A DNA stretch of 37,095 bases from Pelomyxa schiedti (taxonomy: Eukaryota > Protista > Evosea): the NCBI GenBank assembly GCA_020536535.1, contig JAHLWZ010000965.1, positions 1-37,095 of the forward strand, in the 5' to 3' direction. Position numbers and translations under genes: made by a program. Below the pieces are notes generated by a model. The model was not told the origin of the DNA and made no database searches. It worked only from the letters and a program-made list of their open reading frames with translations. Of the stretch, positions 2 to 28,094 are shown piece after piece (within the stretch, counting starts at the first letter, position 1; every line of letters starts with the position of its first letter).

Positions 2-2247
2 AAGGGACACAAAGTTATTCCCGTGGATGACATTTCTTCACACTGCCGTGACATGAGGGCAGAACTACAAAGTGAATTACGTGATCACGAGAATGCGTGC
101 ACTCAAACACTTTCATTGATATCTGACTCTATTGATTCTTCTCATCAAGTTTGACGCCCTCCAGTGCCTCCCTCCAAGTTTGAGGAATTCCAAAAACTCT
201 CCTCAGGCACAATCAGAACTAGAGACTGAAATCAACAGCTGCTTTGAACACCTCATTTCAGTACTACAAAGCCGGAAAGCATGCTTGATAAAGAATTCCC
301 GTGACCTTCATCAAAGTAGAGGTGATTTACATCAAGCCCTCAAGACCCTTTTTCTCATTTTTTAGCTACTCTGTTACAGCAAAATAAGGAAGATATCCGC
401 GAAATTCTTCAAAGGGTTAATGTATCCACTACTACCTACTCACCATCAACCACGGACTTCGAGATAGGCCTACGATTACAGGATACTCGGGCACTCATAA
501 ACGTCAGTTGCCTTTTTGATATAAATTCATTGGTATTCAGGCCCACAACAGGAACTTGTGCACCGTGAAAAGTACACTACCAGTTTAATTGATGCCAACG
601 CAACCATTAGTGAACTCTGTTCTACTCATCTGGAACAAGAAATAAACAATTTTGGATCTATCAGGTCTGCTGGTAATACTTACTTTGGTAATGGTTCCCA
701 AATAACATCTGCCAGTGCCACGGGCAATTACGCAAGAACCGCGCACAACACCTTCTTCATCTACTAACAATACCGCATGCAGTTTTGATGAAATGGGCCT
801 GTCAGACAATGTTTTAAGGTTACGATATAAGTATAAACCAAGTGTAAAATAATACAGAGGCATCTATGCTTGGGGCTTTGAAACTCCTTCCCTACCACAG
901 CGCAATACAATAACAGGAATGATGAGTGGGCGTGACATTCTCACTCAAGCACAACCTGGCACTGGTAAAACTGCTGCTTTTGTAATCCCATGTCTCCAGA
1001 CCCTTGATGTGAGGAGCAACAAATGTCAAGTACTAGTACTTGTTCCCTCCCATGAATTAGCCTTGCAAGTCCACAGGGTACCCTTGCTTCCTTGTCCTTT
1101 CCTTAACAAATCTAAAAATCAGATCATTATTGGCCTGGGAGCGTACCTGCCTGGACTTAAATGCATGACTTGCATTGGTGCTACTAGTGTCAGGGAAAAC
1201 ATGAAAATGATGGATGACTGTCATATAGTTGTTGGAACCCCTGGTCGAGTCTGTGATATGATAAACAGGAAAGCGCTTCAAACAAACTATGTGAAGCTTT
1301 TTATACTTGATGAAGGTGATATTCTGTTATCCAGGTGCTCTTGACTGTCCTCACTACTCTTGTTCTAAAGTTTTTGTATCCTTTCAAGGTCATTTAAGGA
1401 CCAAATTTATACTGTATTTACCTCACTTCCTACGGATGTCCAAGTGGGGTTATTTTCGTCAGGAATGCCCAAGGAGTGTCTTAGTCTGACAGAAAGGTTT
1501 ATGAGGGAACCCATCCGATTCCTGCTGGAAAAGTCTGAAGTAATACCGAGCAACATAAAGCAGTTCCATATTGAACATGACAATGAGAACCAAAGTAATT
1601 CTTTTGATATATAATACCTAAAGTAAACACATGAAACCCTAAATGGTTCCTTTCGTTTTTTCCCCCCAGAATTTTCTACACTTTGTGACTTGTATGAGGT
1701 GGTTAATATATCTCAATCTGTTATCTTCTGCAACACAAAGAGAAAAGTGGATTGGCTAGTTTCCTCCTTGGGAGAGGCCAACCTAATTGGTATGTCGTTG
1801 AGTACCATCACTATACTAACACTATTGTAGCAACTGGAATACATGGAGATATGGCAATCCAGGAACGCAACGAAGCCGTCGCCTCATTTAGAAGTGGTGC
1901 TACACGAGTTCTCGTCACGACGGACCAGGTTAACATTCCCTATTACAGGAAAGTTTCCAACCTACTGGTAGATTTTGGTTGGCATCGATGTTGCTCAAGT
2001 TTCAGTTGTTTTAAATTACGACCTTCCGAATTGTCTAGAGTCTTATGTTCGGAGGTTGCTTGTTCTCTTATTGCATCCATCACTTAACTTTTCCTATTTC
2101 AGAGTTGGGCGCTGCGGGCGATTCGGCAGAAAAGGAGTGGCTATCACCTTGATTTCATTGGCTGCAGACATGACTCTGTTCCATGAGCTCGAGGAAGAGT
2201 TCGGAACTATACCCCCCATGCCCGCCAACATAGAGGACTTTATATGA
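2..2247 (+). CDS. B-box/coiled-coil (TRIM-like) + eIF4A-like DEAD-box helicase fusion with degenerate motifs; 5' end outside window
   Basis: Frame stays open through GT-AG introns 149-206, 322-365, 503-551, 673-715, 819-857 and five further ones. Translation: [10 protein letters not shown] (B-box tail), helical [24 protein letters not shown]...[11 protein letters not shown], then [24 protein letters not shown] (Q motif), [47 protein letters not shown] and the eIF4A-like C-terminus MPANIEDFI*. Confidence 0.85.
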
Positions 2248-2409
2248 TTCTGAAACCCCTGTCTAGGATAGAAGGGGCACCCTCATCGTCGTGGTGCCGC
2301 ACTCTATCTGAGCAACTGTGAAACCCAATTTGGTTTTCTGCTGTTTTGCATTTTCGCCAAAACAGTTAAACACACGAAAAAAAAAAAAAACCTTGTTGGT
2401 GACAAGCAA

Positions 2410-3023
2410 ATGGCCGCTTCAAGACTAAACAATGAACTGCGCGAACTCGCCACCAACCCACCAGAGAACGTAAACGCCAACCCCCTCGATGACGACATTT
2501 ATCACTGGCAAGGAACAATTATGGTTCGTAACATTCACCCCCGTATCTGTTTTTTTTTTTATTTTGATTGTACTCTCCAGGGACCTGACAACACACCTTA
2601 TGCCGAGGGCGTTTTCTTCTTAGATATTTTGGTTCCAACTGACTACCCAGTAAATCCACCCAAAGTCAGCTTCACAACTAAAATCTTCCACCCGGTAAGT
2701 TTTCCGCTTGATTTTACTTAACTTCACCTCATCCGGATCACATTCAACCACACCCAACTTCCCGTACTATCAACACTGACACTCTACACCCAAAAAAGGA
2801 TGTTCGAGGAGATGGCTCCATTTGCCTCACCCTATTGAAGCCAGGACACTGGCAACCAACCATCACAATTGCACAAATCCTGGTCTCCATTCTGGCTCTT
2901 CTTCACGAGCCTGAGGGTTTGGCTGCCCCATTCAACCCTGAGGCCGCCGCCCTCTATCAAAGAGACAGGGCCGCATTTGACCGCACTGCTGCTCAATGGA
3001 CCAAAGACCATGCTTCTGTTTGA
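2410..3023 (+). CDS. Ubiquitin-conjugating enzyme E2, Ubc4/UBE2D-like
   Basis: Exons 2410-2523, 2581-2694 and 2799-3023. Motifs: [60 protein letters not shown] (catalytic Cys present), WQPTITIAQILVSI. Confidence 0.93.
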
Positions 3024-3164
3024 GCAGTCACAAACAAATGAGACAACCATTTTATTTGAAAGGGAAAAAAAAAAATGTGTTTCTATTCAACAATTGAATC
3101 CCTTCAGACATCACGTCAACGATTCATTGAGTGAGCTTATTATGTTGGTGTATTGGTTTGTTGA

Positions 3165-4545
3165 TCACTCGTCTTCGAGGGAGAAGGACAAATGGGCAGG
3201 GGAAGTGAGTGTCTTTTTGGGTTGGGCTGCAGCTGTTTCCGGTTCTACAACTACGGGAGCCTCTTCAATCGTGGTTGCATCAGAGCTCATAAGATTCACA
3301 CCGAATTTAGTTTGCACGTAGTCAAGTAGTCTTGTTGACTGAGATTTCCTGCAAAGACATTAACCAAAAGGTAAATACTAATTTAAGAGTACAATGCTGG
3401 GTCAGTCATGGAGGGGTCGCCAAGAACTTCAAAGATATCATGCAAACAAACAAGGAGAAAGTTGGAGTCGGTCAAGGGATCCACAAAGAAATCTTTTGGG
3501 GCATGCCCAAGCTGTGCTTGCACAATGCACAAGAAGTTGAAGAAAAATCCAGCGTGCCTGTTGCTGTTTCAGAAACAAAAAAGTTAGAGATACGAGATGT
3601 AGTTCATACACTCCAATTGCTTGCTGACAAGAACACAATAACTTCACTATTTCTTTCCATTGCTCGAGAGCAGAGAACGAGGCTGTATATAAGAATAGAA
3701 CATAAGAAAGCTGCAGCTCGCTAAGTAATTCATCTGAGTTCCCTCCGTATACAGTTGTTATCACCCATTCAAGTCTTCCCGAGCCATCGTGATGGTACTG
3801 AGTTCTCTGAGCACAAGGTTAAGTGGAAAAAATTAGAAGGATTACAAACTTCAGTAGGTGAAAGAGTAGCAAGGAAAGGCTTGGGTGGGGACAGATTGCT
3901 GAACTTGGGAATACGGGGAGCATCCTCAAAGAACGGTATAACTTGTTGACTCTGGGAAGTGCTGGAACGCGTTTCATCTCCGCCAGAACATATCTTGGAC
4001 ATTGGAGGTATTGCACATCTTTCTAGCGTCAGGGAAAAGCTTTTACAACTTGTACTATACCTATGTAAGGTTGCCTCCGAAATTCGATCAGATACTTCGT
4101 TCCAGCTGGACATGTGTTGTATGGGATAAGCACCGAGCCTCTGATCAAGCTCGGGTGTATTGACCAAATCTTGCATTCTTCGGATTTCGTCCTCGTCTCT
4201 GACTATCAAACAAAAAAGGAGAGAAGATGAAGCTCTAAGAAAAAGCGAGAATTGTTAGGACTGCACAAAGTTGGCTTATGGCACACCGAATTTGAAGTCT
4301 TCCTCCTTGTCGTCCCAATCGACCACAACAACTCGTTTCTCGCTGCTGAACTTCACAAAAAATGCCAACCCCATTCCGGCTCCACCACCTGACGAGGGCA
4401 TACTGTAGTGCACTAAATGGAGCCCCATTGGGACCAGTTTGGTTCCCATAAACCGCGGCGCCACCGTTCTGTAGCTCACTTCGTCCACACCAAATTCCAG
4501 CTGCCGCGTGACATTACGGCATACTACGTACCCGTAAGGTTGCAT
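3165..4545 (-). CDS. AAR2: AAR2, U5 snRNP assembly factor
   Basis: Motifs: EFGVDEVSY...FMGTKLVPMGLHLVHYS, LDQRLGAYP, LLSELQLSYVLFL, ALEQWKEIVKLLCSC, QLGHAPKDFFVDPLTDSNFL. Five GT-AG introns; TGA at 3165-3167. Confidence 0.9.
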
Positions 4546-11896: not shown

Positions 11897-13433
11897 TTAC
11901 TCTCCACAGAGTCCAGTGAGGGGATTTGATTGAGTTGTTGATGGTGTAGCTTGTGCTGTGGTTTTGGCTGTCCGTGCGGCCTGTATCTTTGTGAGCCAGT
12001 TGGCTGATCGATTCTTTTGTGATGTGAGTACACTTTCATTGACCACATTTTGTTGAGCCACCAGGTTCTTGGTACCCAAGTTACACGGCAGAAGCAAGTC
12101 CAACGTTTCACTTGAATTTGTTGCTGGAGAAGATGATGGTGCGGGGGTGGATGATGCCGATTTGGATGAATCAGGTTTGCCGGGGATGATTGTTGAAGTA
12201 TTCGGGGTGGTACTTTGTGCTGCTTCATCGTACTGTTCCAGAATCTGCCGGCGGAGAACTCTGCTTGGTGGGGGCTTGCATCCTGGTGGAAGTTGAGTGC
12301 AACTCGGTGGTTGTGCCTTGACTGCTGCCATTTTGGATGCAAGGATGTGTGTTGAAACAGGGCCAAAAATGGCATCCTCGTGCGAAAGTTCGGCAGCGGT
12401 CAGAGTGGGAATACCGTGAGTACCGTGTAACTTGGAAGGGAGTTCAAAGTCATCTTCGGCATCTATCAGTGATTAATGAGAACCCTTGTGGAGAGAAGAA
12501 TGAACAATACCAAGTAGAGTGTCATTTACATGTGGTCTTTCATCTAATGGTGCATTGGAATTCAAGTCGAACCTGCGAGTAAAGGAAAGTATAAGGGATT
12601 AAAAAAAAAGTAATTGCATAATGCCTTTCCCAACCACGATCACTACTTTTTACGTTGGGAGTAGTTGCATCCTCAGATGTTTCTTTAGAGGTATTGTTCC
12701 GTGGACCATCTGCAACTTTCCCCTCACCAAGAGTACTTGCCTTTTGTTGGTGTAAAAGTGTGCTGTCAAAGGCAGCTTTTTTTTTTTTTGTTAGAGGGAA
12801 AACCCGATTGAAAGTACTGCAAGCTCTACTCTACATACAAACTTTACATAGCTGCAGTTGCATTTTTTCTTTTACCCTCTGGGCTGGAGTCTGAAAAGTA
12901 TGAGTGAATGTGGTGAAATGGTAGGAAAACAACAACCATATTATCATACCCAGGGATCCCATCACGTAGTTTTCTTGATGTGAAATTAGTAGGAGGCCCA
13001 CCGGAATGCTGTTTGGTTCAAACCTTGTGTGTGGTGCCTTTGTTCCACTACAATCAGACTCAGAATCAGAATCTTGTCTTCCAGTCATATCCCTGACCAC
13101 CTTTTGGTCACCACAAATAGGAGCCAAATAAAAACAAAAAAAAAAAAAAAAAAAAAAAAACAAATATAACAAGCCAGCCAAGCACCTTCCAAATTCGTCC
13201 ACGAGCACCTCCTTGTTCCCATCATCGCCTTTCGGGTTCCTGCGGCCGCCACGCCCGGCCCCTACCGCCGCCTCGTTGTGCCTCGTACTCTTCCTCCCGC
13301 CGCCCCCGGTGTTCGCTGTGCCCCTGCCCGACGCTTGCGGCTCCTTCCGTGCAACCCCTTCGCCTTGCGCCACCCTGGCCCTCTTGGGTCGTGGCGGCAC
13401 TGCCCCTCCTTGTCCCCTGTCTCGAGTCGCCAT
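11897..13433 (-). CDS. Conserved hypothetical protein (basic N-terminus; TPAQRVKEKMQLQL / GWERFD..APLD / HEDAIFG motifs)
   Basis: The multi-exon chain includes a GC-AG intron at 12573-12624. The motif series resembles, from memory, an uncharacterised eukaryotic (plant-annotated) family. The N-terminus has NLS-like PRPKRAR. Confidence 0.65.
12573..12624 (-). other. GC-AG intron
   Basis: Minus strand reads TGG GAA AG|GCATTA...CTCGCAG|G TTC GAC, restoring GWERFD. The segment contains no GT. Confidence 0.75.
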
Positions 13434-13560
13434 TTTGTTTCTTCTAAAGGGATCTGATGGGAGGGTATGGGTATTACCCACAAAACACTTTTATGTAATT
13501 GCTTTTTTATTCAGATTGGCCAAATACAACAGACAACTGTCAAAGAATCAGACGCAGCTA

Positions 13561-15698
13561 TCAGTGGAAACTGCGCATAGTATCCGCACGGGATGAGGTT
13601 GTGTAGGAAGTAAGGCTGTCATAGCCGTACGAGGTGACACGCTGCCTGTAGTGCCCGGTGCCACACGTAGTCATGGTGCTGTGCCCATATGAGGTATAGG
13701 AACGCCTGTCTTGTACTCCAGCGAGGCATGTCTCCAGGTCCTTCACTAGACTGAGGCAGAATGCATCCTCCCCTTATGTTATGGTTGGTTGATTTGGTGT
13801 GTGGAGGTAGTTTTTAGAATGTGTGAAGTTACTTGAAGCTGACTCCTTAATTCTGCTTATGGCATCTGATAGAGTTTTCCTAGATTGGTCCAGTTGATTG
13901 TCGTTGGCTAGTCTGGTGGCAACTTCCATAGCTTCAGCTGCCAGCAACCTCTGAAGTGGTGTAAACGAAAGAAAGAACGCGAGTTTGCTACATTTCTCTG
14001 AATGTCAAGCTTGAGGTTGATTTTTTGGTCTAGCGGAGCCTCGACAGGTCGGCGTACACTACATACACACACTTTGGTTTCTTGTCTTCCTTGCACCACA
14101 TCTCGATATGTCACGTTTATGGACAAAAGCTGATGTTGTTCAGTAGGCTCCAGCATCGCCGGGATTTTCAACTGTGTGATGATTGTCAAAAAAGGAAGTT
14201 ATTTGGTAGAGCGTACTGAAACAAGGATATCTCTGTGCTCCTCGGCTTGTATATCCGCAAGAGCAAGTTCGTAGCTGGTATTTGGTGTTATTTCTCTAAC
14301 CTCGAAGCCTGTAAGAATCTTCTGAATTTGAGATCCATTGACTAAAGCCTGGTCAGAAATAAAAGGGGTTCAGTTTAGCATACTTGCATCAAATCTCAGA
14401 GTCACATTTTGTGCACAAACACTGAGAAGGCCGCCAAGACAATTTGCAAACGATTCTACAATGCGCGGTTCTGCCTCAACATAATAGAAAACACCGTTCC
14501 CAGCTTCGGCAATCTACACGAGGAGAACGATGAGATGCATTAACTTGGAATTGGGAAAACCTTCTTCAGCAAGGTAGGGTCGTGGTCTGAACCAAACCCA
14601 AAAGTATTCACAGTGCAGGGAAGTATTGTTTTAACAACCTAAGAAACAAGTCAGCGAGGAATACTAATTAGTTGCTAACTACTTTCTCTCTGTTGGATCG
14701 GTTGTAGTTCGGATTGTGCATGAAATTGATAATGTCACTCTCAGATGTTAGCCCTACATTGGCAATTCCATCAGTGAAAACAATGATACTCGCCCTGTAG
14801 AATGGTATTGATATGTGATGCAGTTCGAAATGAGTAGCATACACTTCACTGCGCTTATTGGTACGCATTTGGTTCAACCCAGCCCCAATTCCCCCAGCAA
14901 GATTGGTTGAGCTACCAGCAACTAACCTACCAATAGCCCTTTTTGCGTTCTCTACACCTGTCTTGATTGTGAGATTTACCAATTAAGCCAAGCACCTGAA
15001 CTGACCTTCAGTATCAAGGGAGGTAAGAGGGAGTTCGACAGCTATGTTGTCATCAAAAGAAACAATGGATATCCTATTTGTGGAACTAGATGAGATTTGA
15101 TTGATGTGTCGTGTCCTTGTACCTATCAGTGGGGAGTAAGTGTTCAACAACATGAACCATTGTCTTCTTCACAAGTTCCAGTTTTCCTCCTTCCATACTA
15201 AACAAATAAACGAAGTATTAGCAACCAATGCACAAAAGGAAACGTGATTAAAACTCGCCTCCCACTACGATCAATCACAGCAACAAGGTCAATCGGTGCA
15301 CGAACAGTCGGCTGTACAAGAGGTTAAATTTTGCAAGAACGCATGTAATAAGGATACAAAGTAAGAATGACAAAAAGGGGTCAAAGAGAGAGGTTGCTAA
15401 CCTTCCACTGAGGAGCAACCAAAGAAGCCATCACAACCAATTCACGCTCAGTTGGGTAAGTCACGGCCTGCAGCTCAGGCGTCGACTCCAAACTCAAACC
15501 ACTGTCCACAGGCGCCGCAGTGCTCGTTGTGCTCGTAGTCGAAGTAGTTGCAGTCGTAGTCGCAGTTGCAGATGACGTAGGCGACGCGGAACTGGGCGCA
15601 GACACGGCTGTGGTTTGTGGTGGCTGTTGCACTACAGTAGTCTCGTCCATCGTGAGATCTATCACCGGTATACCGCCAGGCGCTGTTTCGGATGACAT
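13561..15698 (-). CDS. von Willebrand factor A domain protein (APIDLVAVIDRSGSM type)
   Basis: MIDAS motif VIDRSGSMEGGKL, RISIVSFDD, STNLAGGI, IIVFTDGIANVG, NTFGFGSDHD, IAEAGNGVFYYVE, FANCLGGLLSV, LADIQAEEHRDILV, and a C-terminal helical region. Confidence 0.9.
15198..15258 (-). other. GC-AG intron splitting the vWA MIDAS DxSxS codons
   Basis: Minus strand reads GAT CGT AGT GGG AG|GCGAGT...TTTAG|T ATG GAA, giving DRSGSME. Only the GC donor restores the motif. Confidence 0.85.
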
Positions 15699-15906
15699 GT
15701 TGCTACTATGAGGGACGGTTTTTTTTTAATTTTTTTTTACTTGGTTTGAAATTTTTCACTTTGGGATGACAAATCGAGATCTTGAAACTAAAATGGCAAC
15801 CAAGTTGCTTGGTTGGGGTAATTTGTTGGTAGGTAGTGGACAAAACCAGTCTCTGAGTCTGTCACTTGTGTCGTTGTCTGCGTTGTAGTTGTGATTCTTG
15901 AGCGAG

Positions 15907-18900
15907 TCAAGAGTGGGAGTCCTTAAGTAGAGAGGCTAACATTCTTGTGGTCTCTGTGATGTAGTTGGGTCTCTCTACATAATACGCCTGGAGTGATACT
16001 TTGTTGCCAAGTGTTGGTTGTGCAGACTGGAATTTATGTTGTGAGTGAGTATTGATGTCGGTGGAGTGGATAAGAACCTGATGTGGAACCATTGCCCAGG
16101 CGTATACTATGAATAGGGAGTTACTACACAGGTCCACAGTGTCGAGATAGTCCAGGGTTCTATTGTATATTTCGTCATAGGCGTCTGCTGGATTATACAC
16201 TTGGGCTTTGTTCACGATATGACTATGTGACCCTGTGTGCCGTTTGTGAGAGTTCCATGTGTTGGTTTGTTTTGTCGCACTTACACTCAAATGACCCTTT
16301 GGAGTGGCAGTATACAAGTATTTCCTCCTGTACTCTTCCACTCCTTTCAGTTATTTGAAGAAACGTCTAAAACGTACTCCTTTGATATTGAGAGTATAGT
16401 CAATGTTGACTCTTCCTCACAATGGAGGTATGCCGTGTTAGACCCATCATCTAATATACAGAGACTTTTCCAATGGGTAGTTCCACCGCTTTGTAGTTTA
16501 GAAGTGTGGCAAGCAAGGGTATAATTACAGCAATAAAACCACCTGTAAGATACAGTGACTCGTATTGGCGTGACTGTAACAGAGTTGATTCTAACGGTTA
16601 CTTGTGTGAACTTGGTGCTTAAGCTTTTACTTAGCTCAAGTAATGAAACAGTGGGTAAATTCTCTAAGAGCCTGAATGGAACATCACGCAACACGTAACT
16701 ATGTGGTGACATACTGTTTATCCATTTCATTGGGAACAACCTCACAGGGTGTTTGTCCTCTGAGAATGGGTGTGAATCGCGTTCTGTCAAGGCCCTCATA
16801 AGACAAAAAACTTTCCTATTGGTAGAACAAAAACACATAAAACTGCAAGAATAAAACTGGTGGAAAGACGAAAGAGCAAGTGGGATGGAAGAGTAATTAC
16901 ATCATTAAAAAACATCTTGATCAAACTGGCTTCAATATGTTTTGTGCACTTGAAGAATGTCACAATAGATCCGGGAACCTAATGAGGCACTTGATTTGTA
17001 TGCACAATCAAAAGAGAAAAATTACCAGTCCGGTGGGGTGTAAAGATAGAGGGATCTTCATTGAGATGAGGTGAGGCTGTGAAACATCTTGGATTGTCAA
17101 CAGAGAATTCTGATTATTCTCTGAGAATTGTGTTGAAGACGGGACATGGAAGACTTACTGAAGGGAAGAGGGCTTTGGATATGAGGGTTCCTCTGAAGGA
17201 GAACAGTTCAGTATCAGGGCCGGCCATACTGAGAAGATCACGAACGCTGCGGTTTGAGTGTTTAGATCTTTCTTCCTCCCTCTTTGTTGTGGTTACTTAT
17301 GAATAGTAGTGTGCTGGGCCGCCAGTGATGCCTCCTCCATACGTGTCAGTGACACTTTGTGCGAGGTTTCGTGTATGCACAAGTGCGGCGTCATGTCTTC
17401 AGCGGATACCAAGGAAGCAGCTTCAATGCTGGCTGCATTAGGTCAACGGGAAGAAAAAAAACTTACAGAGAAAGGTTTACATGGCGGGATTATAGTAATA
17501 ATCGAGGAAGAAGATTTGTTCACATCACGGGCACCCTTGATGGAATAATAATTGTTTGGCTTGATGAATACATAATGGCCAGTATCCCTGCCAGCAAAAT
17601 TTAGAGTAACCTGGGGGAAAAAAATTAGGATTTTTGACATTTATCTCCTACTAGGTAATCACACCGATTCGTTGTGTTTTTCGTGTTGTCCTTGGTTGTC
17701 AACTTGTATGAGGTGACCCAATACAGAAAATCCATTGTGTGAAAGGCGTTTGTTCTTCGCCTAAAGAATGTGTGTTACCGATAGGATGTTACCCAAAAGA
17801 ACTCTTTACCAAAAGAATGAAAGAAGAAGAGGCGGGAACTTCATCATCCTTGTGAGTGAACGGAAGGTCGACTGATGTGTGACTAAAGTGCAGGCTATCC
17901 GCCATCATAAATTGAATGATGTGACGAGGATTTGTTTCACAGATGAAATTAAATCTATCGCTTTGCGTTAAAGCCTGTATTGAGACTCAGCTTACTTATT
18001 AACAATGCACAATTTCCCCAGATGATGTGGAAGAGCGTCCGGTACAATGGCAGGAAGACGGTTGACATTATCAAATAGAGAAAGGGATTTTAAATCGGCA
18101 CTCATGACCAAAAAGCCGGCCGTCCACACTTTCTGTTCCAAATCCTCATCAGTTATCACTGGCACAATTATTAAGGAAAAAAAAAAAAAGAATAGCTGAG
18201 AACCTTGTGATAGGGACTCGGCCAAAATATTAGTTTCTACAGTTTTCATCAATTCACAGAGTGAAACAAATTTTGGTGGTTGTTTACTAAAACCACTGCT
18301 TCTAAAAAAAAATTAAAAATGGGCAAGAAAAAAACAAGCCTTACATTGTTGCACATATGTTTCCTCCCACATGATGACTTATGAACTGGTCGTATACATC
18401 TCTGATGAGCTGCACAGCACCAAGATGTCTGATGATCTCTTGCATGTGTCCCTTCTGTCCCAGTGTCAGAAGAAAAATGTTGAAGTGTAAAACGAACCAT
18501 GTCAGTGGAACCAAGAAGCTCATCTAAAGATAAACTTGGGAATTGAGATGAAAAAGACTGGAATGACTCGTTGAACCTTATTTTACCAACTTGTTATATT
18601 CCACAGAGTTAAGCAGTCACAAAATACCAAATTGAGTCTGGGATGCTCAGGTGTTCCATATAGGGAAAGAGGCGGCTTGAAGAGTGGATGATTGGATAAA
18701 AGCACTCTGTACTGCTGGAAAACCTGCCAACGGAGATATGGCCATAGATGCAAAATCCAAATCCCTGCATTTATTTAAGTGCACTGATATCTCAAGGGAG
18801 CCGTACAATGAATTTGCCATTATAAATGATTGGATGTGTGTTGTGCAAAGTGATCCTGGCACCATTCCTCAATCCCCTTTTTTGTAGGAATCAATCATTG

Positions 18901-20472
18901 CTAGGTGATATCTGGTGAAGTGGTAGGGGCCAAACCTTCCCCTTGTCCAGTGGTGTTGCAAAAAAACTTTGACACTGCCGTCCAACTGAAGTATAAAACC
19001 CTAAGTTTGAACCGTTACCTTGGGGTTAATCCTCAAGATGGCACACGTGCTGACGGCCAGTGATTGTACCACAGTAGCTCACAACTTCAATCTCCCTCTC
19101 TTGCTGCGTTTCCCACATTGAAGTGTACTCATGAAGTTGAGCAAATGACAAACAAGGAGCTGTGTTGGGATCTTCAGGTGATATGGAGGTAGTAAGCATT
19201 GTAGATGATGCCGAGGACGAGGCCATTACAGAGGAATTGGAGATAATTGCCTCACTTTCAGTTGAGTGCATATGTTGTGGCTGGTATACAATAGAAACAT
19301 GTGGTCGAGTAGATGGATGAGCAACAAGAATGAATCTCTCCCTCCTTGTTTTGGGGAACATCTTTGTATTGGCAAGGTTAGAAATTATAACCTCTTGCCC
19401 CTGGCTTAAAAATGGACGCCATCGCACACATTCCTTTTCAACAAAGAGTATAGCCGTAACACAATCACTGTGGGAGGGAGTCACTGAGGGAGGAGAAAAA
19501 GAAAGGAAAGGAAACCCATGTGTCAATTCAATAAAAGAAAACGGGTTGTACGGCGACCGTTGGTTCTTCACTATGATGGCACTGAGAGCACTAATAACCC
19601 CTCTCAATGTAAACAAATTTTTTCTGTTACCTCTAAGTTTATGCACGAAAATAGAGAACACATACATTGTACTTGCAGAACCACTTTGAGTAATATGGTT
19701 GGCGAAGTCTGAAACTGTCATGACATAGTTTCTCTCCAAGAAAGGACTTTCAACCAGGCAACAGGAAATTGGTTTCCAGTCCTCTTATTTGATATAAGAT
19801 TGTGTTAAATTGGGTTCTGCAGCAAAATCAGAAGGAGAAATCTACCAGCTTCAATGTACGGGAGATAGAGGCGAGATTGTGACTTTACAGCAGATATGTT
19901 AAGTCTCCATCTACGCACAAGCAGCATAGTCTCATGCATATGAGGCGGTGGTGGATCTGTAAACAGTATAGGTATACTCCCTGTCTGATCTTCCAGGCAC
20001 AAGTCACACGTGTCATCTGTGTTAAGTTTAAATAAAAATAAATACCTCAAACAAACAAACAAACAAACAAACAAAAAAAAAAAAAAACCAAACCTTGTGC
20101 CACCAATTTTGCTATCAACGGGGAAGTAATGTCACCGACTTTGGACGAGCTCAAAGACGACAGATCTTTTACAGTGGGCACATTCCAATCAGGCACACTT
20201 GCCTCAGTCCCCCAGTCCTCAGGCACGCAGTACTCCAGAATCGCCCCTGCCGCCAATCTGAACGACTCCTCACGGTCCATTGGGAACTTTTCCTTGATCT
20301 TAGCCCACACTTTGGCCCAGGTCTTGTCCGGGGCCCCGGCCCCTCGCGGTCCATTTCTTCTCATCGTGGATCCTGGCGACCGGGGAATCAGTCCTCTTAC
20401 CAAGGCCCACTCGGACATCGACAGCGACGTGTTCGTCCCTACTTCGTCTTTCTGTGGTCTCCCATCGTCCAT
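15907..20472 (-). CDS. CTC1: CTC1-like multi-OB-fold subunit of the CST telomere complex
   Basis: Large multi-exon gene with CTC1-style OB-fold motifs: LCLEDQTGSIPIL..LVRRW..YIEA, LRGVISALSAII, WRPFLSQGQEVIISNL, VVSYCGTITG, and C-terminal CILDDGSNTAYLHC. Exon boundaries are only partly resolved. Confidence 0.7.
20047..20072. repeat. (CAAA)n tetranucleotide microsatellite followed by poly-A, in the first CTC1 intron
   Basis: Directly visible: caaacaaacaaacaaacaaacaaaca followed by an A-run. Confidence 0.85.
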
Positions 20473-20660: not shown

Positions 20661-22503
20661 ATGTCTACCGGAAACACGACAGACAACGTGCCTACAACGA
20701 CCTGTGTTAAGCGGGAGGAGACCCCACCGGGGCCAATCGGGACCCCTGCCGCCGACGTCCCGTTGGCGGCCGTTACTGACGCTACTACGATGTCGTCTAC
20801 GCCCATTACGGTGCCGCCACCGCCGCCAATTGCCTTAGAATCAACTACACCTACAACGACAACTACAACGACAACTACAACTAGTGGTGCCGTTGTGGCG
20901 GGGGAAAGTGGGGGCGACGGTGCCAACGGCAACAACAGCGGTGGGACTGGCAGCAAGCGGAGATCGAGCGTGCCGTGCCACCGGTGTAAGAATGACCACT
21001 TGTTGGTGCCGTACACGTGGGACGAGCTGCTGGAGGAGAGAGACGAGTACCGGGATGGGATGGAGTGCAGCGTTTGTTTCAGCCACATCAGCAGGAACCG
21101 CGTGGAAGTACCCACTGTTTTGCATTGCACACCCGTATCATGCCCTCTCTTTTTTTCTTCGGAACACACATCACATTTCTTGATTGCCTTTTGTACACAA
21201 ATTCTAATGTTCTATACAGTGTGACTTCTCCTTGTGTGCTGCTTGCTCAAAACCGGGGAATAAGCCAGCAACACCACCGGCAACACCAAAACATTCAAAG
21301 TCAAGTAACACGTCATTTGAAGCTGTAACTGAAACAGTGAATGACACCCCCAGACGCCGCAAACACAAGAAAGATTCCAGCAAGCCCTCTCGGTCCGAAA
21401 GAGTTAAATCTCCTCCTGAAAAACGAAGTAGAGCTTCTCGTCAGTCGGCCTGTGCACAGCGCACCAGTGGCGATGTTATACAAGTTACATTATCTATGTA
21501 GCACCAATTGTAATTCACGAACAGATCCAAGACACTATAAAAAGGGAAATCGAACAGGAATTTGATACAATGGCTAAGACAGTCAAAAAAAAGCTTGAAG
21601 AAAAAAAAAGAGAGCTTGTTTCCCAAGTCTCATCAAACTCCCAAGTATGTACCAAAGGACAGTTTAGTCTTTCTAATAGTTCCTTTACTTTCACGCTAGT
21701 TATCCTTTGATCCATTTGGAAAATTAAACACCTGTGACGGCGTGCGTAAACAGAAGGTAATCACTGTTACTACCATATAAACTTGTTGACTTGAAAAAGC
21801 TCTTGTCAATTAAAGACCGGTTTTATGCTGTAATGGATGAAACCCTTGCTCTCTTTTCTATACACCGAGGTTACTTTGCTTATTATCCTCTCTGCTAACA
21901 ACATAGCAGGTGTACATCTCTTTGACATCCCGGTTATGATTTTGAAACAAATAATCGAATATCTTCCTGACGACTGCCTGCAAAAAGTCCGCACAGTATG
22001 CAGAACCTTACGACATATTGTTCACAATGGTACCATTAAAACATAACCCACTATTATTAAGACGATTAGTTGTGGCTTGCACTGTATCAGGCAGTATATT
22101 GATTGGAAATATCCGCAACTCGATAAAGGATCCAGTACACAACGCACCTACAGTCCGCACACTAACCGGAGGACTAGTATCACGAACAATGGACTTCACA
22201 CTCAGAGCCAGTTTCAAAAAGAGCAAGGGCGTACTCGTTACCATCTGGATAAAGGAGAAGAAGCTCTATGTGTCAGACAAGAAAGTCACCTTTTCTTTCC
22301 AAAGGAGCAGTGAATGCCCAGAAGTTCTGCTGACCAAAAACAAGCACTTCCAACGGAGTCACCTAGCAACACTTGCAGCCGAGAACGCCGGCTACGGCTG
22401 GTTTTTATCCCTGCCCCTAATTGCAGACCGTGACGCCTTTGTGGTGGTGTACACTATTCAAGACACCTCAATCGGACAAGGTGGCTCGTACATGAAACAT
22501 TGA
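20661..22503 (+). CDS. ZZ-like zinc finger + coiled coil + F-box + MATH-like beta domain protein
   Basis: One frame through six GT-AG introns: CHRCKNDH..CSVC..HCTP|CDFSLCAAC, then coiled coil IKREIEQEFDTMAKTVKKKLEEKKREL, F-box LFDIPVMILKQIIEYLPDDCLQKVRTVCRTLR, and C-terminal ...GYGWFLSLPL..FVVVYTI. Confidence 0.7.
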
Positions 22504-22662: not shown

Positions 22663-24501
22663 TCAAGACGATGCAGCGATTTTAAAGTGCGCACAAACGT
22701 CGTGAACAGAACGGGAAGCATATTGGCGTGAATGCTCCCGTGCCTCCCTTGTGTATCTGGCTTTATCTTCCTTGAAGAGTGTTGCTTTGTAGGTATCCAG
22801 GGGGTCATCTCCGTTGGGATGCTCCATGAGTGTTTTTATTGCCGTGAGAATGCGGGAGATGGAAAGTGCTGGGTTCCAGGCTGTGCTGAGTAAGTCAAGG
22901 CAAATTCTGCCATCGGAACTCATGTTGCAGTGATAGATGGGAACAATGAAGCGGACTTGTGGGGGATTGGCTGGGTAGGTTCCGGGGAACTGAATGCTGA
23001 GCATCCACCGGCATCCTTCGTATGGTGTTCCTGTTGGCCCCTCTATTAGCACTTTCCAGAACATACAGTCATCCGCATTAACCCAGGCCCCAGCAACAAT
23101 TGGTGTGGGTTGGCCAAGTAAATCCCGCAGCTCTTTGAAGACACGCTTGGTTGTGGTGGTTGATGCTGCTCGGGCTGCTAAAGCTACTTCATAAGCTCCA
23201 ACCAATACGGGTGCAGTTGCCTGCTTAGGTACCACAGACTTGACATCACTCACCCCCTGTGCCGCTTGGGTATTGAATAGACGCGAAAGGTCACCCTCTG
23301 ATCTGGGTGCCGATGGCGGAATGGCCGGAGGGTCGCGGCATGAAACCCGTAGTAATGCTTCTCGCTCGAAGAGACCTATACCTTGTGCGACTTGTGATAC
23401 TGCTAGACAGAGTCCTCCAGTGGTAGCTGCCATCGCCTGCAGCCAGTTGTTTGCACCAGCTAGGGGAAAAGCATCCAGAACTATATTCCTTTTAACCAAC
23501 TCTGCAGCAACTTCCCAGTGCCTCCTGGAGCTGGCTATTTATTCGTTAGGTCTAGGAAACTACACGAGAAAAAAAAAGGTACATGTATCATCTCCATCAG
23601 TCAAGCAAAATACTCTGGCGAGGCATTCTGGGTGCAGATCAGCAGAGTGTGATTTACGGAAATTTTCAATGTGCATGGCAGCATCGTAGATGGCATCGTA
23701 TAACTTGGTGCTCCCCTGTGATGTATCAAGCTCTCCCAGGGCACCTTCAAACTTGGTGCAATCCCGGGTGAAGGGTGTGAAATCAAGTCTGCTACCAAAA
23801 GTAAGCAACCCAATGGCATGAGGTAACTCTGCGCCAGCGTATTTATCAATCATGGCCTGGAAGAGGATTTTGCCCACCTCGGCCCTTGTTTTTTCTCTAT
23901 CGAAGGAGTCGGATTTCATCGAACCACTCACGTCGAAAGCAATAACATCAATCTGGGTGATTGGCCTCTGATCGCCGTGGTCAGGTTCCGGGCAAGACGA
24001 ACTTGACGAAGTGGATGTGGTGGCCACAGTTGTAGCTTCAGGAGTGGAAGACGAAGTTGAAGTTGTAGCAGGAGCAGTGGTTCCTGGTGGAGAAGTAGTG
24101 GTTCCAGGCATGGAACTAGTCCCTCCAGCAGAGGTACCAGGACCACCTGTTGTTGGGGGTGCAGCAGCAGTTCCAATGAAGCGGCGAAGTGCATCCTTCA
24201 CTCCAACTGGTAAATTCAGCTCTTTCCATCTAAGAATCAATGGCCGGTTAGGGGGAATGTTTGTACTAGTATATTATCCTTATACAATGTCATTGGGTGC
24301 AATTTGGCAGCGAAAATAGGGTTAGTAATTATAAAAAATGAAAGTTGGTAAGTACGAGACATCAGTTGCATCCCTGAGGTCATCAACTGTAGTGAATTCT
24401 TCGTTGTGAAGTACGCCCATCCACTTTTCACGTTTATCCTGAGGCTTGTCGGGAAACACAGCCTCCATAAACGCTTGGTCGATTTGCAATTTCGTTGTCA
24501 T
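22663..24501 (-). CDS. SAM-like + vWA + ubiquitin-conjugating enzyme (E2) fusion protein
   Basis: Exon 1 ...LHNEEFTTVDDLRDATDVS|WKELNLPVGVKDAL (SAM-like); vWA IAFDVSGSM, GLLTFG, TKLYDAI, FCLTDGDD; E2 KRVFKELRDL, WKVLIEGPTGTPYEG, YPANPPQVRF..IYHCNMSSDGRICLDLL..WNPAL, PNGDDPLD. Two GT-AG introns. Confidence 0.92.
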
Positions 24502-24757
24502 TCGTTCTCTGCCTTATTGTTTATGATTTGTAGTGTGTTGGTTGTTTTCTTGTTTTTTGTGCTTGTGCAATACCTTTGGTTCGTTGTTACCTCTTGTTCA
24601 AAAAAAAAGTTTCGTTTGGTTTTTGAAAGTCCTTCGTAAATCAGTTGTTCAAGGAATCCTTTTTACCGGCAAAACGGCCATTATTAAAACCCTTCCTTTT
24701 TCAAAAGAAACAAAAAGTAGTAAAAAAACCAAACAACCAAAGCACTCTTGTTGGACA
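24502..24757. promoter_or_regulatory. Putative bidirectional promoter between the vWA-E2 and RhoBTB-U-box genes
   Basis: 256 bp AT-rich gap between two divergent ATGs (24501 minus, 24758 plus), with T-rich and A-rich tracts. Confidence 0.6.
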
Positions 24758-27062
24758 ATGGAAGCGATAAAAGCGGTTATTGTTGGTGATGGTGCCGTGG
24801 GAAAAAGTTGCCTTTTGATTAGTTATACAACTAATGCTTTTCCAAGTACGTCTTCCATTAGGTTTTTGTATTTTTTTTTTAATCAAACTATCACAGGTGA
24901 ATATGTTCCGACTGTATTCGAGTGTGCAGCATACCTTTTTATACTTTTCCTGCTCACTTTTTCCCCAGCAACTACTCTGCAAATATTATGGTCGATGGGA
25001 AACCGATCAGCCTTGGATTGTGGGACACAGCTGGTCAAGAGGTAGATTGATAGAATGTTTGTAGTGTATTATGACACAAAAAAGGATTATGATAGGCTGA
25101 GGCCATTGTCTTATCCTCAGACTGATGTATTTATTATTTGCTACAGCTGTATCAGCCCCACAAGCTTGGAGAACGTAAAATCCAAGTGGATCGAAGAAAT
25201 TAGACATCACTGCCCTGCTGTTCCAGTTCTCCTCTCCTGCAATAAATGTGACCTGAGGAAAGATGCCAAATGGTCATCCAAACAAGTACCAAAAGCACAA
25301 GGTGATGCCATAGCCAAGGAAATCGGTGCTGTGGGGCATTTTGAAACATCCGCCCTCACCACAGTCGGTTGCAAAGACCTTTTTGATGCTGCAGTCAGGG
25401 CGGTTATATGTGCTCCCAAATCCGCCAAGAAGGCAAAAGCCAGTGGAGGTGTATTTGGCTGGTTCGGAGGAAGTTCTTCATCCTCTTCATCTGAACCTTC
25501 GACACCAGCACTTCCTCCACCTCCAGTGCTGCCAAAAGGCATTCCTGCACCCTGGATCAATGTAGCTCCTTCCACATACTCAGACGATATGCGCCGCTTG
25601 CTGAATCACCATCGAGGGTCCACAGATATTACATTCATTCTTAGAAGTGAGCCGCCCAACACACAACCAGCTCTGCTTGCCCATAGCGTCGTGTTGATAT
25701 CGGCATCAACTTTGTGGAAACGATTGTTAATCGAATCTCCACATCTATGGCGAGAGCGAAAGCCTGTAGCTCTGGTGCCAGCTGCCGTTGAACCAAGCTC
25801 TACTGACCCAGCTCTTCCTGACAAACCATTGCCTGAATTCCTTGATCCAGTTACTGAAGAGTTGATGCAAGACCCGGTTATAGCCGCCGACGGGCATACT
25901 TATGAAAGGAGTGATTTACTTGTCTGGCTGAGCAGGCATGACACCAGCCCCGTTACTGGAGCTCCACTTGCAAACAAGGAGCTGGAGCCCAATGAAAAAC
26001 TCCATGCACGTATTGAGGAGTTCTGTTTGAGGACTGGATGGAAGGCCAAGGGCTCCATGCTAGGTGGGCCAGCAATTCCTGCGTCTCCTTTTGGATGCTA
26101 TCTCATTGAAGCAATCCAATTCGCAAATCAGGACCGTCCTGAGAAAGGCTTGGTGGTTGTAATGGAAAATAGTGTTACCCGCCCAGCAATGGAGCGCCTG
26201 ATCGAGTTCTGGTACACCGGATTGCCAGGGATACCTACTAGTGCTGCTGCTGACCCGGTAGTCCAGCAACTCACAACCGCTGCCACTGCCTTTGGCAGCG
26301 AACACCTTGGCACAATATGTAAAAACATAGAGGAGGGGAGAGACATGCTCAACCCATCAATCGGAACATGGCTAAACGACGAGACCGGGAAGGAAGCAAA
26401 GGCACTCTTCCTGGGTCACGAAACCATGGCCGATGGAGCTTTCCTCGTTCAGGGAAAAACAGTACCGGTGCACAAATCATTCCTGAAGGCCCGGTGCAGT
26501 GTTTTGGCTTCACTACTTAAAGGTGATAGCCCTACAGAAATCGAAAACGTTTCAGCACAAAGTTTCCTGGCAGTGCTCGAATTTATCTACACAGATCACG
26601 CTCCAATAGACACTGAATGTGACACAGACAGATGCGAGGTTCTACATCTCGCTCATAATCTAAAACTCCCCAGACTAATTACACTTGCGGAGCTGTATTC
26701 CTCCAAGGCAGTTGAAGTAGCCACACGGGAAAGTGTCAGTCAATGCAAAATGCCTATTTGCGCCTTGCTCGAAGCGGCACAAGATGCAGACGCCCAGCAA
26801 CTTGTTAAATTCATGCAACACTTCTGCTGCACAAACTACGGGCCCATTTCACAGCGGTCTGACTTTGCCAAACTGTCATCAGCGAACAAGCACTACATTG
26901 ACGAAAACCAGTAAGACCAGTCCCTATTTGTTTCTCTGTCCTCCTTCTAATACAAAAAACAACTACAGGTGGCCTCCCAAGAGTTATCTCAAAGAAGTTG
27001 AAGACTACGAGAAACTCGTGGCTGGTGCTGGTGGAAAGAAAGATAATTGTAGTGTCATGTAA
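24758..27062 (+). CDS. RhoBTB/RacA-type GTPase with a U-box inserted in the split BTB1 domain and a C-terminal CAAX box
   Basis: Rac-like G domain ([43 protein letters not shown]), then a Pro-rich linker. BTB1 N-half [17 protein letters not shown]; U-box [40 protein letters not shown]; BTB1 C-half LIEFWYTG; BTB2 [30 protein letters not shown]; C-terminal WPPKSY and ...KKDNCSVM*. Four GT-AG introns. Confidence 0.93.
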
Positions 27063-28094
27063 ACTTCTTTGTCCTGTTGGAAAAAAGTTTTTCATTTTAC
27101 ATTTGCGGTTGTTGGGCTTGATTACGAATTGATGGTGGGATTCCAGCGGTGTTGAGGTTATTGCCTAAATTGTGCCAGTTGGTTTCTGTTGGCGGAGTAT
27201 TCATGGCTGTGTGAAGTTTGTGGGATGGGACCAACAATGCACACCAGTGTGCGAGCCACTTGGTGGTCTTTTCTGCCATTGGCACTGGTGTGCTCCTCAG
27301 TGATGTTCTTGAACATCAATTGAAGCTTGTGCCATGCCAATCCCATCAGGAGATGTGGGGAATTTGATTGCTGACTTCAAGGTATTTTGTCCTTGAATGT
27401 CTCCCCTGGAAGAAATCAATGTTAAAACTATGATGAAATAAATCAACCACAAAGGGCCGATTTGAATGTGTGTATATACGTTTCAGGTAGACATAGTAAC
27501 CTAAATACAACACACAACACACAAGTGGGCCATCGTAGCATACCCAACAAATGAACAACACTGTTTCGTGTATGCAACGTCTTCCGACGTTGAGGACCCT
27601 GCTGCAGCGAAAAAGATTGCAGTCCTTGGTTGATGTTTTGCGCGAGACACTCCTTGACTTGTGTGAAAACGCTCCATGTCCGGAACCAAGTTGGCGGAAT
27701 AAAAAAACACCAGACCGCCGATCCTGAGCGACGATAACGAAAATGACAGCGTTCCGGTCCGTTGATTATTTTATTCAGCCAGTAATGTCGTTGTGCCGAG
27801 TGTAGAACGAAAAGTGTGTCGTTTTGTGCTGATCCGCATTTTATTGGGTGCACGGCACCCCGGGGTGTTTAGATGGTGCTTGTTTAGTAAAACCCAGATA
27901 CAGGACTTGGGTCAACAAGTACTTACTGGAAATAACAACCCTGTGTGTAGGAATGGGGTTTCCTTGTTTGGACCAACAACACTCTAGTTACCTGCAACTT
28001 TTCTGCGGCCAACACCAGTTCTTTTTTAAGGACTTTCGGTTCGATTTTTCCCGTTTTGCTTACAGCTGTAAGCAAAAAGGGAAAAATCTAACCG

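Follow-up and report, generated by a model that had tools for sequence, protein, structure and literature searches.

The 37,095-bp contig C965 of the 52-Mb assembly of Pelomyxa schiedti, analysed here over its whole length and called the window below, carries two fusion genes of the ubiquitin system that are transcribed outward from a short common gap. One encodes a ubiquitin-conjugating enzyme (E2) whose catalytic UBC core follows a SAM-like domain and a von Willebrand factor A (vWA) domain. The other encodes a RhoBTB-type protein, in which a U-box lies inside the first of two BTB domains (BTB1 and BTB2), behind a Rac-like GTPase domain and ahead of a C-terminal CAAX box. Pelomyxa schiedti belongs to the Archamoebae; it is a free-living anaerobe, and its spliceosomal introns are short. 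Here, profile searches, structure models, trees, RNA contigs and comparison of gene order lead us to conclude that the adjacency of the two genes is real and more than chance, and we weigh whether the two products may work together as E2 and ubiquitin ligase (E3).

Architecture and expression of the two genes

The two genes and the region between them are laid out as follows.

22663-24501, minus strand: gene for the SAM-like/vWA/UBC protein (P0271, 554 residues), whose exons are exact substrings of P0271, with a spliced RNA contig and Pfam as further evidence
24501-24356, 24229-23583 and 23534-22666, minus strand: exons of this gene, followed by the stop codon at 22665-22663, from translations compared with the database protein
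24502-24757, no strand assigned: divergent intergenic region and putative shared promoter, 256 bp between the start codons, T-rich and then A-rich on the plus strand
24758-27062, plus strand: gene for the Rac-like GTPase/BTB1[U-box]/BTB2/CAAX protein (P0001, 701 residues), from the exon check and Pfam
24758-24845, 24897-24921, 24969-25041, 25085-26910 and 26969-27059, plus strand: exons of this gene, then the stop codon; exact substrings of P0001

The large plus-strand exon has as its best match a P. schiedti database protein of 701 residues named 'rac gtpase', which is 100% identical and is P0001 itself. The product of the minus-strand gene, P0271, is divided into four parts.

24166-24480, minus strand: SAM-like five-helix domain (residues 8-70), split by the 126-nt intron 24230-24355
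23398-23961, minus strand: vWA domain (residues ~139-310), with the motif DVSGS of its metal ion-dependent adhesion site (MIDAS) at 23920-23934, split by the 48-nt intron 23535-23582
23158-23397, minus strand: linker between vWA domain and UBC core (residues 311-390) with the motif LFEREA, from family conservation and the AlphaFold 2 model
22717-23157, minus strand: UBC (E2) core (residues 391-537), with Cys476 at 22900-22902, Ala453 at 22969-22971 and HCN for HPN

Pfam identifies UQ_con (4.6e-38) and VWA_2 (1e-6) in P0271. In the full-length AlphaFold model (predicted local distance difference test, pLDDT, 87; predicted template modelling score, pTM, 0.71) the vWA domain, the linker and the UBC core form one confident unit, with pLDDT above 90 in the vWA domain and 86-97 in the linker, and residues 76-133 are a disordered linker of Thr, Ser and Pro. 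The MIDAS is complete: D148, S150, S152, T223 and D260 vary little or not at all among 35 family members, and F320, E321 and R331 of the linker are invariant. The first 70 residues, which correspond to the SAM-like domain named in the preliminary description of this DNA, have no sequence match in Pfam or in the PDB. They are modelled by AlphaFold 2 as five helices (pLDDT 87), and W20, E28, F29, W43, L48 and P49 are invariant in 24 family members. The best Foldseek matches of this N-terminus are mostly SAM domains (EphA7, tankyrase, BICC1, p73 and Ste50), with template modelling scores of 0.6-0.69 and a root-mean-square deviation (rmsd) of about 2.1 Å. Because the E-values of these matches are non-significant (>0.7), the designation SAM-like is consistent with the model but not proven.

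The UBC core is nearest to UbcH5/Ubc4 (UBE2D). UbcH5 chains of the PDB align with it at e-38 and about 43% identity, its top Foldseek match is 2oxq_A (rmsd 1.2 Å, 43% identity), and it superposes on UbcH5 chains at about 1 Å. It retains Cys476, His466 and Asn468, all three invariant in the family, together with Asp478. Shared with the Ubc4/5 enzymes are the active-site Cys, the HPN Asn, Asp87 and Asp117; the W-x-P-A-L loop, here W-N-P-A-L, and the helix-1 Lys/Arg residues that contact E3s are kept as well. In contrast to UbcH5, the core ends a protein of 554 residues, after the SAM-like domain, the vWA domain and the linker, the HPN motif reads HCN, with Cys as its middle residue throughout the family, and Phe62 is replaced by Ala. 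Overall, the vWA-E2 looks catalytically active.

The plus-strand gene encodes a protein with the following parts.

24758-25432, plus strand: Rac-like GTPase domain (residues 1 to ~178), Pfam Ras, with a shortened Rho insert
~25571-25729 and 26096-26338, plus strand: the halves of BTB1, which align to RacA 229-260 and 308 onward and flank the insert
25832-26029, plus strand: U-box (residues 312-377) within the BTB1 insert, from Pfam, the genome scan and the RacA alignment
26417-26692, plus strand: BTB2 (residues 507-598), Pfam BTB 1.4e-17
27048-27059, plus strand: CAAX box CSVM for farnesylation (residues 698-701), from the sequence, preceded by WPPKSYL (residues 672-678)

In P0001, Pfam finds Ras (3.7e-21), U-box (2.2e-18) and a single BTB (1.4e-17), which is BTB2; the U-box (PF04564) scores 66.6 bits against a cut-off of 21.4, and 70.8 bits in the genome scan. 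The protein resembles the RhoBTB proteins (human RHOBTB1/2/3 and Dictyostelium RacA) in its Rho GTPase, proline-rich linker, split BTB1, BTB2 and WPP..YL C-terminus, and its nearest ESM Atlas clusters are RhoBTB1/3 and racA. Residues 1-277 align with residues 1-260 of RacA from Dictyostelium purpureum at 52% identity, and residues 420-686 with residues 308-574 at 38%. The alignment thus reaches residue 686 and includes WPPKSYL, so that the RhoBTB C-terminal region is present, and because both flanks align to RacA, the U-box stretch 278-419 (142 residues) replaces the 47-residue BTB1 insert of RacA. P0001 differs from the known RhoBTB proteins in that its BTB1 insert is a complete U-box and in that all its GTPase motifs are canonical and Rac-like: GDGAVGKS (10-17), the T35 loop, WDTAGQE (56-62), NKCD (115-118) and SAL (151-153). 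Of the scanned relatives that include the N-terminus, nearly all keep these motifs, and the GTPase looks switchable. A CAAX box is present in RhoBTB3 and absent from RacA and RhoBTB1/2 (PMC8305917); unlike the latter proteins, P0001 carries one. The human RhoBTB proteins bind cullin-3 via BTB1 (PMC8305917), and the U-box insert may alter cullin-3 binding of P0001.

The domain architectures given in the preliminary description are thus borne out for both genes by Pfam, by the conservation of the MIDAS and by the catalytic Cys476, which lies in the motif quoted there. Its 256-bp divergent gap is found at 24502-24757 between the start codons, and its view of the plus-strand product as a prenylatable Rho GTPase with an internal U-box agrees with the Pfam U-box, the RacA alignment and the CSVM end.

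RNA data were available as Logan contigs from three single-cell RNA runs of one sample. A 1587-nt RNA contig spans 22743-24478 and omits exactly 23535-23582 and 24230-24355, both GT..AG on the minus strand; since it omits exactly the two introns, the E2 gene is expressed and spliced as modelled. The minus-strand RNA contig stops at 24478, 23 nt within the annotated coding region, with loose letters attached that we take to resemble the end of a template-switch oligo. If they are that oligo, the mRNA begins at this point of the annotated coding region, and translation of P0271 may in truth start at Met12 (ATG at 24468), behind a 5′ untranslated region of about 10 nt. No RNA support for the start of the plus-strand gene was found in the three runs. 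At positions 23050, 23332, 23380 and 23826 the RNA contigs depart from the genome sequence (C>T, G>A, A>C and A>G), consistently across runs, which looks like strain or allele variation between the cells used for the transcriptomes and the assembled genome. In addition, a 63-nt RNA contig with short flanks omits 133 nt within the UBC exon (window 22965-23099) with the non-canonical ends AT..CA; this skip is most likely an assembly artefact.

Conservation of the divergent pair

The pair recurs in Mastigamoeba balamuthi, in whose genome gene names carry the prefix m51a1 (PMC8136499). The closest relative of P0001 outside Pelomyxa is P0003 (m51a1_g9329, reverse strand, 12553-15505), which is 56% identical, and the closest relative of P0271 is P0121 (m51a1_g9330, forward strand, 15770-17490), which is 59% identical. 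The two Mastigamoeba genes bear consecutive numbers, face outward and are separated by 264 bp, versus 256 bp in Pelomyxa. Because these orthologues share the divergent layout, the head-to-head arrangement is no accident of contig C965, and the divergent pair dates back at least to the common ancestor of Pelomyxa and Mastigamoeba. As annotated, P0003 contains an 87-residue GTPase block twice in tandem (residues ~39-125 and 129-215), which is probably an annotation or assembly artefact.

Orthology was read from quick maximum-likelihood trees. P0271, P0121 and two metagenome proteins form one clade (Shimodaira-Hasegawa-like approximate likelihood ratio test, SH-aLRT, 100; stem 0.70), apart from other vWA-E2 paralogues such as those of Pelomyxa contig C959 and Mastigamoeba g14564. 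Likewise, P0001, P0002, P0003 and a Mastigella protein form one clade (support 100; stem 0.72), and both partners thus have a long stem branch at the base of the Archamoebae. P0271 is a fast-evolving Archamoebae paralogue of a wide eukaryotic vWA-E2 family. On the RhoBTB side, P0002 on contig C1006 is a recent duplicate of P0001 (81% identical), and the terminal branch of the linked P0001 measures 0.004 versus 0.19 for the dispersed P0002.

About 41 UBC loci and about 19 U-box loci are present in the Pelomyxa genome, and no contig other than C965 carries both kinds; with an assumed gene number of 15,000-20,000, about 0.1 adjacent E2/U-box pairs are expected by chance. A third RhoBTB-type gene is more divergent and shows traces of a U-box; it lies at 1333-4099 (minus strand) of the 4.1-kb contig C1639 (L015), where the contig end cuts off its upstream side, and may correspond to the older Mastigella paralogue P0307.

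Two gene families and their U-boxes

Both gene families are wide and apparently undescribed: in our literature search neither a vWA-E2 fusion nor a U-box in RhoBTB was described, and only generic reviews surfaced. The combination of RhoBTB, U-box and a C-x-x-M end is found in Mastigamoeba, Mastigella, Arcella, Amoeba proteus, Copromyxa, Flabellula, Rhizamoeba, Luapelamoeba and Anaeramoeba ignava, the C-x-x-M end being present in most of the complete family members scanned. Stenamoeba and Sappinia carry a RING at the site of the U-box, and for a Vannella relative the RING is known by database name only (P0016, P0045 and P0068). These discosean relatives have exchanged the module while retaining the remaining architecture, and an E2-recruiting module of one kind or the other appears to be what is kept. 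The Arcella entry in UniProt has been named automatically as a 'RING-type E3 ubiquitin transferase'.

For the vWA-E2 family, more than 100 clusters match the whole 290-residue exon that encodes the end of the vWA domain, the linker and the UBC core, among 1.84 billion cluster representatives, and a hidden Markov model of the linker finds the family linker in 108 of the 150 best vWA-E2 matches. The named members belong to Mastigamoeba, Arcella, Clastostelium, Fabomonas, Ectocarpus and Heterosigma, and the whole family shares the SAM-like start, the MIDAS and the HCN motif. A metagenome scan with the alignment of the E2 clade locked onto the MIDAS pattern common to vWA domains, and all its matches were bacterial vWA genes.

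Many relatives of P0271 carry a U-box of their own. The ESM Atlas contains a eukaryotic cluster of 458 members with UQ_con, VWA_2 and U-box, the U-box being present in 97%, and another cluster of 61 members with all three, and Pfam detects a U-box in 11 of 25 vWA-E2 representatives longer than 800 residues. The fused U-box mostly lies 20-30 residues past the UBC core and in one instance before the vWA domain, and the fused proteins have the family linker (LFE.E motif) and HCN. Six other long representatives carry a ubiquitin-like domain. On a FastTree tree of the family the U-box state changes at least seven times, a count that truncated sequences may inflate. Judged from these sequences, the fusions show that U-boxes are a recurrent partner of the vWA-E2 module; that the RhoBTB U-box is that partner does not follow. 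The fused proteins of Coilia and Gadus thus match P0271 in vWA domain, linker and HCN-UBC, and in them the module is combined with a U-box; they differ in that the U-box is part of the same polypeptide, with long N-terminal regions or an OTU domain added, whereas in Pelomyxa it belongs to a separate RhoBTB gene.

The fish proteins themselves, Gadus chalcogrammus LOC130378566 (P0185 and P0308-P0312) and Coilia grayii KAL2078640.1 (P0241), are uncharacterised and combine a vWA domain, an HCN-UBC and one or two U-boxes, in the cod (Gadus) fusion with an additional OTU deubiquitinase domain. No single-chain E2/E3 or E2/E3/deubiquitinase enzyme of teleosts was described in the literature searched. 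A correlation between loss of Phe62 and a fused U-box in the vWA-E2 family was considered and rejected, as a raw Fisher p of 0.007 left nothing in an independent-pairs test on the tree.

Interpretation of the pair and neighbouring genes

Do the two proteins belong to one pathway? That they act in one ubiquitination pathway as dedicated E2 and E3 is plausible but unproven, and we put its chance slightly below even. Three independent clues agree in pointing this way: the conserved divergent pair, the recurrent fusion elsewhere and the parallel divergence of the partners. In such a scheme, an ancestral Archamoebae pair would be transcribed outward from a short shared promoter region, and its E3 would be a farnesyl-anchored RhoBTB-type protein with a U-box in BTB1. 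The GTP state of the Rac domain would free the BTB1/U-box module at the membrane, the U-box would engage the ubiquitin-charged vWA-E2, and the vWA metal site and the SAM-like domain would hold the E2 on the ligase or on substrates, while the BTB domains may additionally recruit cullin-3. Co-regulation, binding between E2 and U-box, GTP gating and tethering through vWA or SAM-like domain are steps that we only infer. Rather unlikely, in our estimate, is the strictest form of this scheme, a two-gene cassette in which a membrane-anchored, GTP-cycling Rac switch controls a U-box that works solely with the E2 encoded next door, this E2 having abandoned the Phe62 contact and relying instead on its vWA metal site or SAM-like domain to stay on the ligase. 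If it were true, the cassette would divide between two genes what the vWA-E2-U-box enzymes of fish and other eukaryotes unite in a single chain, and would be the first conserved divergent E2/E3 gene pair described in a eukaryote.

A number of observations weigh against a dedicated pairing. As to linkage, that g9329 and g9330 lie on the same scaffold is a strong inference from consecutive numbers and contiguous coordinates, not from DNA. Short divergent gene pairs tend to be retained whatever their function, and the retention of this one was judged at this single locus of Pelomyxa and Mastigamoeba. No vWA-E2 gene lies upstream of the P0002 duplicate on C1006, and the vWA-E2 paralogues of contigs C959 and C427 have neither RhoBTB nor a U-box nearby. 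On a metagenome contig that carries a member of the E2 clade, the 870 bp upstream contain no Rho exon, and in Anaeramoeba, in Ectocarpus and on three other contigs the neighbours are unrelated. The families also occur apart, with vWA-E2 genes in stramenopiles and Fabomonas and RhoBTB/U-box genes in Anaeramoeba. Because paralogues and outside relatives are unlinked, the pair is a feature of the Archamoebae and not a rule of the families. The conserved head-to-head synteny envisaged in the preliminary description therefore holds for Mastigamoeba balamuthi, but neither for the Pelomyxa paralogues nor outside the Archamoebae. As to expression, the same three runs that hold the E2 transcript contain no RNA contig for the RhoBTB gene (24563-27100 is uncovered), and since such contigs show presence and not absence, the co-expression suggested earlier is left unsupported, which is not proof against it.

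The presumed contact between the two proteins raises a further difficulty. Contacts of the CHIP type centre on Phe62 of the E2, which is the main RING/U-box contact of UbcH5, and on the Ile of the CPI motif of the U-box. The pairing hypothesis assumes this canonical contact, as between the CHIP U-box and UbcH5 or Ubc13 (PDB 2OXQ), whereas the Pelomyxa pair has Ala and Val at the two positions. Most of the vWA-E2 family has Phe at the Phe62 position, with a replacement in about a third of the representatives; P0271 has Ala453 there, the Mastigamoeba orthologue likewise has Ala, and the two metagenome members of the clade have Ala or Thr. The U-boxes of the Archamoebae RhoBTB clade in turn read DPV, DSV or DPI where most relatives have CPI, Val for Ile being a conservative change. 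Both sides of the canonical contact are thus altered in the Archamoebae lineage (Phe62 to Ala/Thr and CPI to DPV/DSV/DPI), and because both changes reduce side-chain size they are not compensatory. The only conclusion we draw from these residues is that a canonical, high-affinity E2/U-box contact cannot be assumed. A special kinship between the RhoBTB U-box and the fused U-boxes was also rejected, since against a profile of RhoBTB U-boxes the fused ones gain no better scores than the other U-boxes of Pelomyxa. A complex prediction with the U-box (P0001, residues 300-390) and the UBC core (P0271, residues 385-554) returned a score of 0.00, which gives no verdict and counts neither as support nor as refutation. 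Of the cognate E2-E3 type of pairing proposed in the preliminary description, the part that has gained is the association with U-boxes, which many vWA-E2 relatives carry in cis; its weak points are the confinement of the linkage to Archamoebae and the Ala in place of Phe62.

What else could account for the locus? An adjacency that arose by chance, in a compact genome with many ubiquitin-system genes, would fit a window that also holds a second E2 gene (2557-3017) and a marginal F-box gene, but it is very unlikely in view of the orthologous pair in Mastigamoeba, in the same orientation and at nearly the same spacing, and of the roughly 0.1 such pairs expected, the gene number being assumed. A real, though doubtful, possibility is that the two genes are conserved neighbours only, kept together by a shared bidirectional promoter since the Archamoebae ancestor, with the RhoBTB/U-box protein using generic UbcH5-type E2s and cullin-3, and the vWA-E2 serving other ligases or acting alone on substrates bound by its vWA domain. 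Such an account is in line with the spread of the vWA-E2 family without a RhoBTB/U-box neighbour or homologue, the unrelated genes that adjoin the Anaeramoeba RhoBTB/U-box gene, the unlinked Pelomyxa paralogues, the Ala in place of the main E3-contact Phe, the RhoBTB transcript missing from the RNA contigs that hold the E2 transcript, and the general resistance of short divergent pairs to rearrangement. It is harder to square with the repeated fusion of U-boxes to the vWA-E2 family, with C965 as the sole co-location of E2 and U-box in the genome, and with the parallel long stem branches of both partner clades.

We regard it as improbable that the vWA-E2 is self-contained, binding substrates through its own vWA and SAM-like domains and resembling an E2/E3 hybrid without a U-box, so that loss of Phe62 would mark a retreat from E3 binding and the neighbour would be irrelevant. 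The replacement of Phe62 in other family representatives, the modelling of vWA domain, linker and UBC core as one confident unit, the invariant MIDAS and the presence in some relatives of ubiquitin-like or OTU domains rather than a U-box would all suit such an enzyme. Yet the E3 contacts of helix 1 and the NPA loop are kept in P0271, the conserved pairing with a U-box gene would be left unexplained, and since many relatives carry a U-box in cis, E3 help is evidently used in the family.

Plant RGLG proteins are ligases that combine a vWA domain with a RING and work with UBC35/Ubc13, and UBE2O and BIRC6 are E2/E3 hybrids; they resemble the Pelomyxa proteins in that a vWA domain or extra domains are joined to ubiquitin-transfer modules. 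In RGLG, however, the vWA domain is on the E3, whereas in Pelomyxa it is on the E2, UBE2O and BIRC6 have no vWA, SAM or GTPase domain, and a conserved divergent gene pair is found in none of them. The matching of E2s with E3s has mostly been worked out case by case, and to our knowledge eukaryotic genomes offer hardly any clues of the operon kind. If the pairing is true, the locus would provide a case, directly open to experiment in Mastigamoeba balamuthi, of ubiquitin transfer under the control of a small GTPase, and it would suggest a role for the uncharacterised vertebrate vWA-E2-U-box proteins. If it is false, two families apparently new to the literature still merit proper annotation: the HCN-type SAM-like/vWA/UBC proteins, found from amoebae to brown algae and fish, and the RhoBTB proteins of Amoebozoa and Anaeramoeba with a U-box or RING in BTB1 and a farnesylation box.

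Apart from the pair, the window holds few recognisable genes, and a Pfam search of 20 other open reading frames found almost nothing. The neighbour downstream of the E2 gene is the following.

21837-22503, plus strand: convergent downstream neighbour with a marginal F-box, Pfam F-box 22.0 bits (cut-off 20.5) and F-box-like 23.9 bits

The convergent F-box gene of the preliminary description is therefore present, but its Pfam scores are marginal, and a protein search with its 161-residue exon gave no homologues; it is not shown to be part of the module and adds nothing testable. The RhoBTB/U-box gene of Anaeramoeba ignava also has an F-box-like gene as its immediate downstream neighbour (L016:12719-13339). 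Kinship of the Pelomyxa and Anaeramoeba F-box neighbours was rejected, as their sequences show no similarity. The second E2 gene, at 2557-3017 on the plus strand and called Ubc4-like in the preliminary description, was found as two exons by tblastn with the UBC core; it is about 35% identical to the vWA-E2 core and has Val at the position of UbcH5 Phe62 (YPVNPP).

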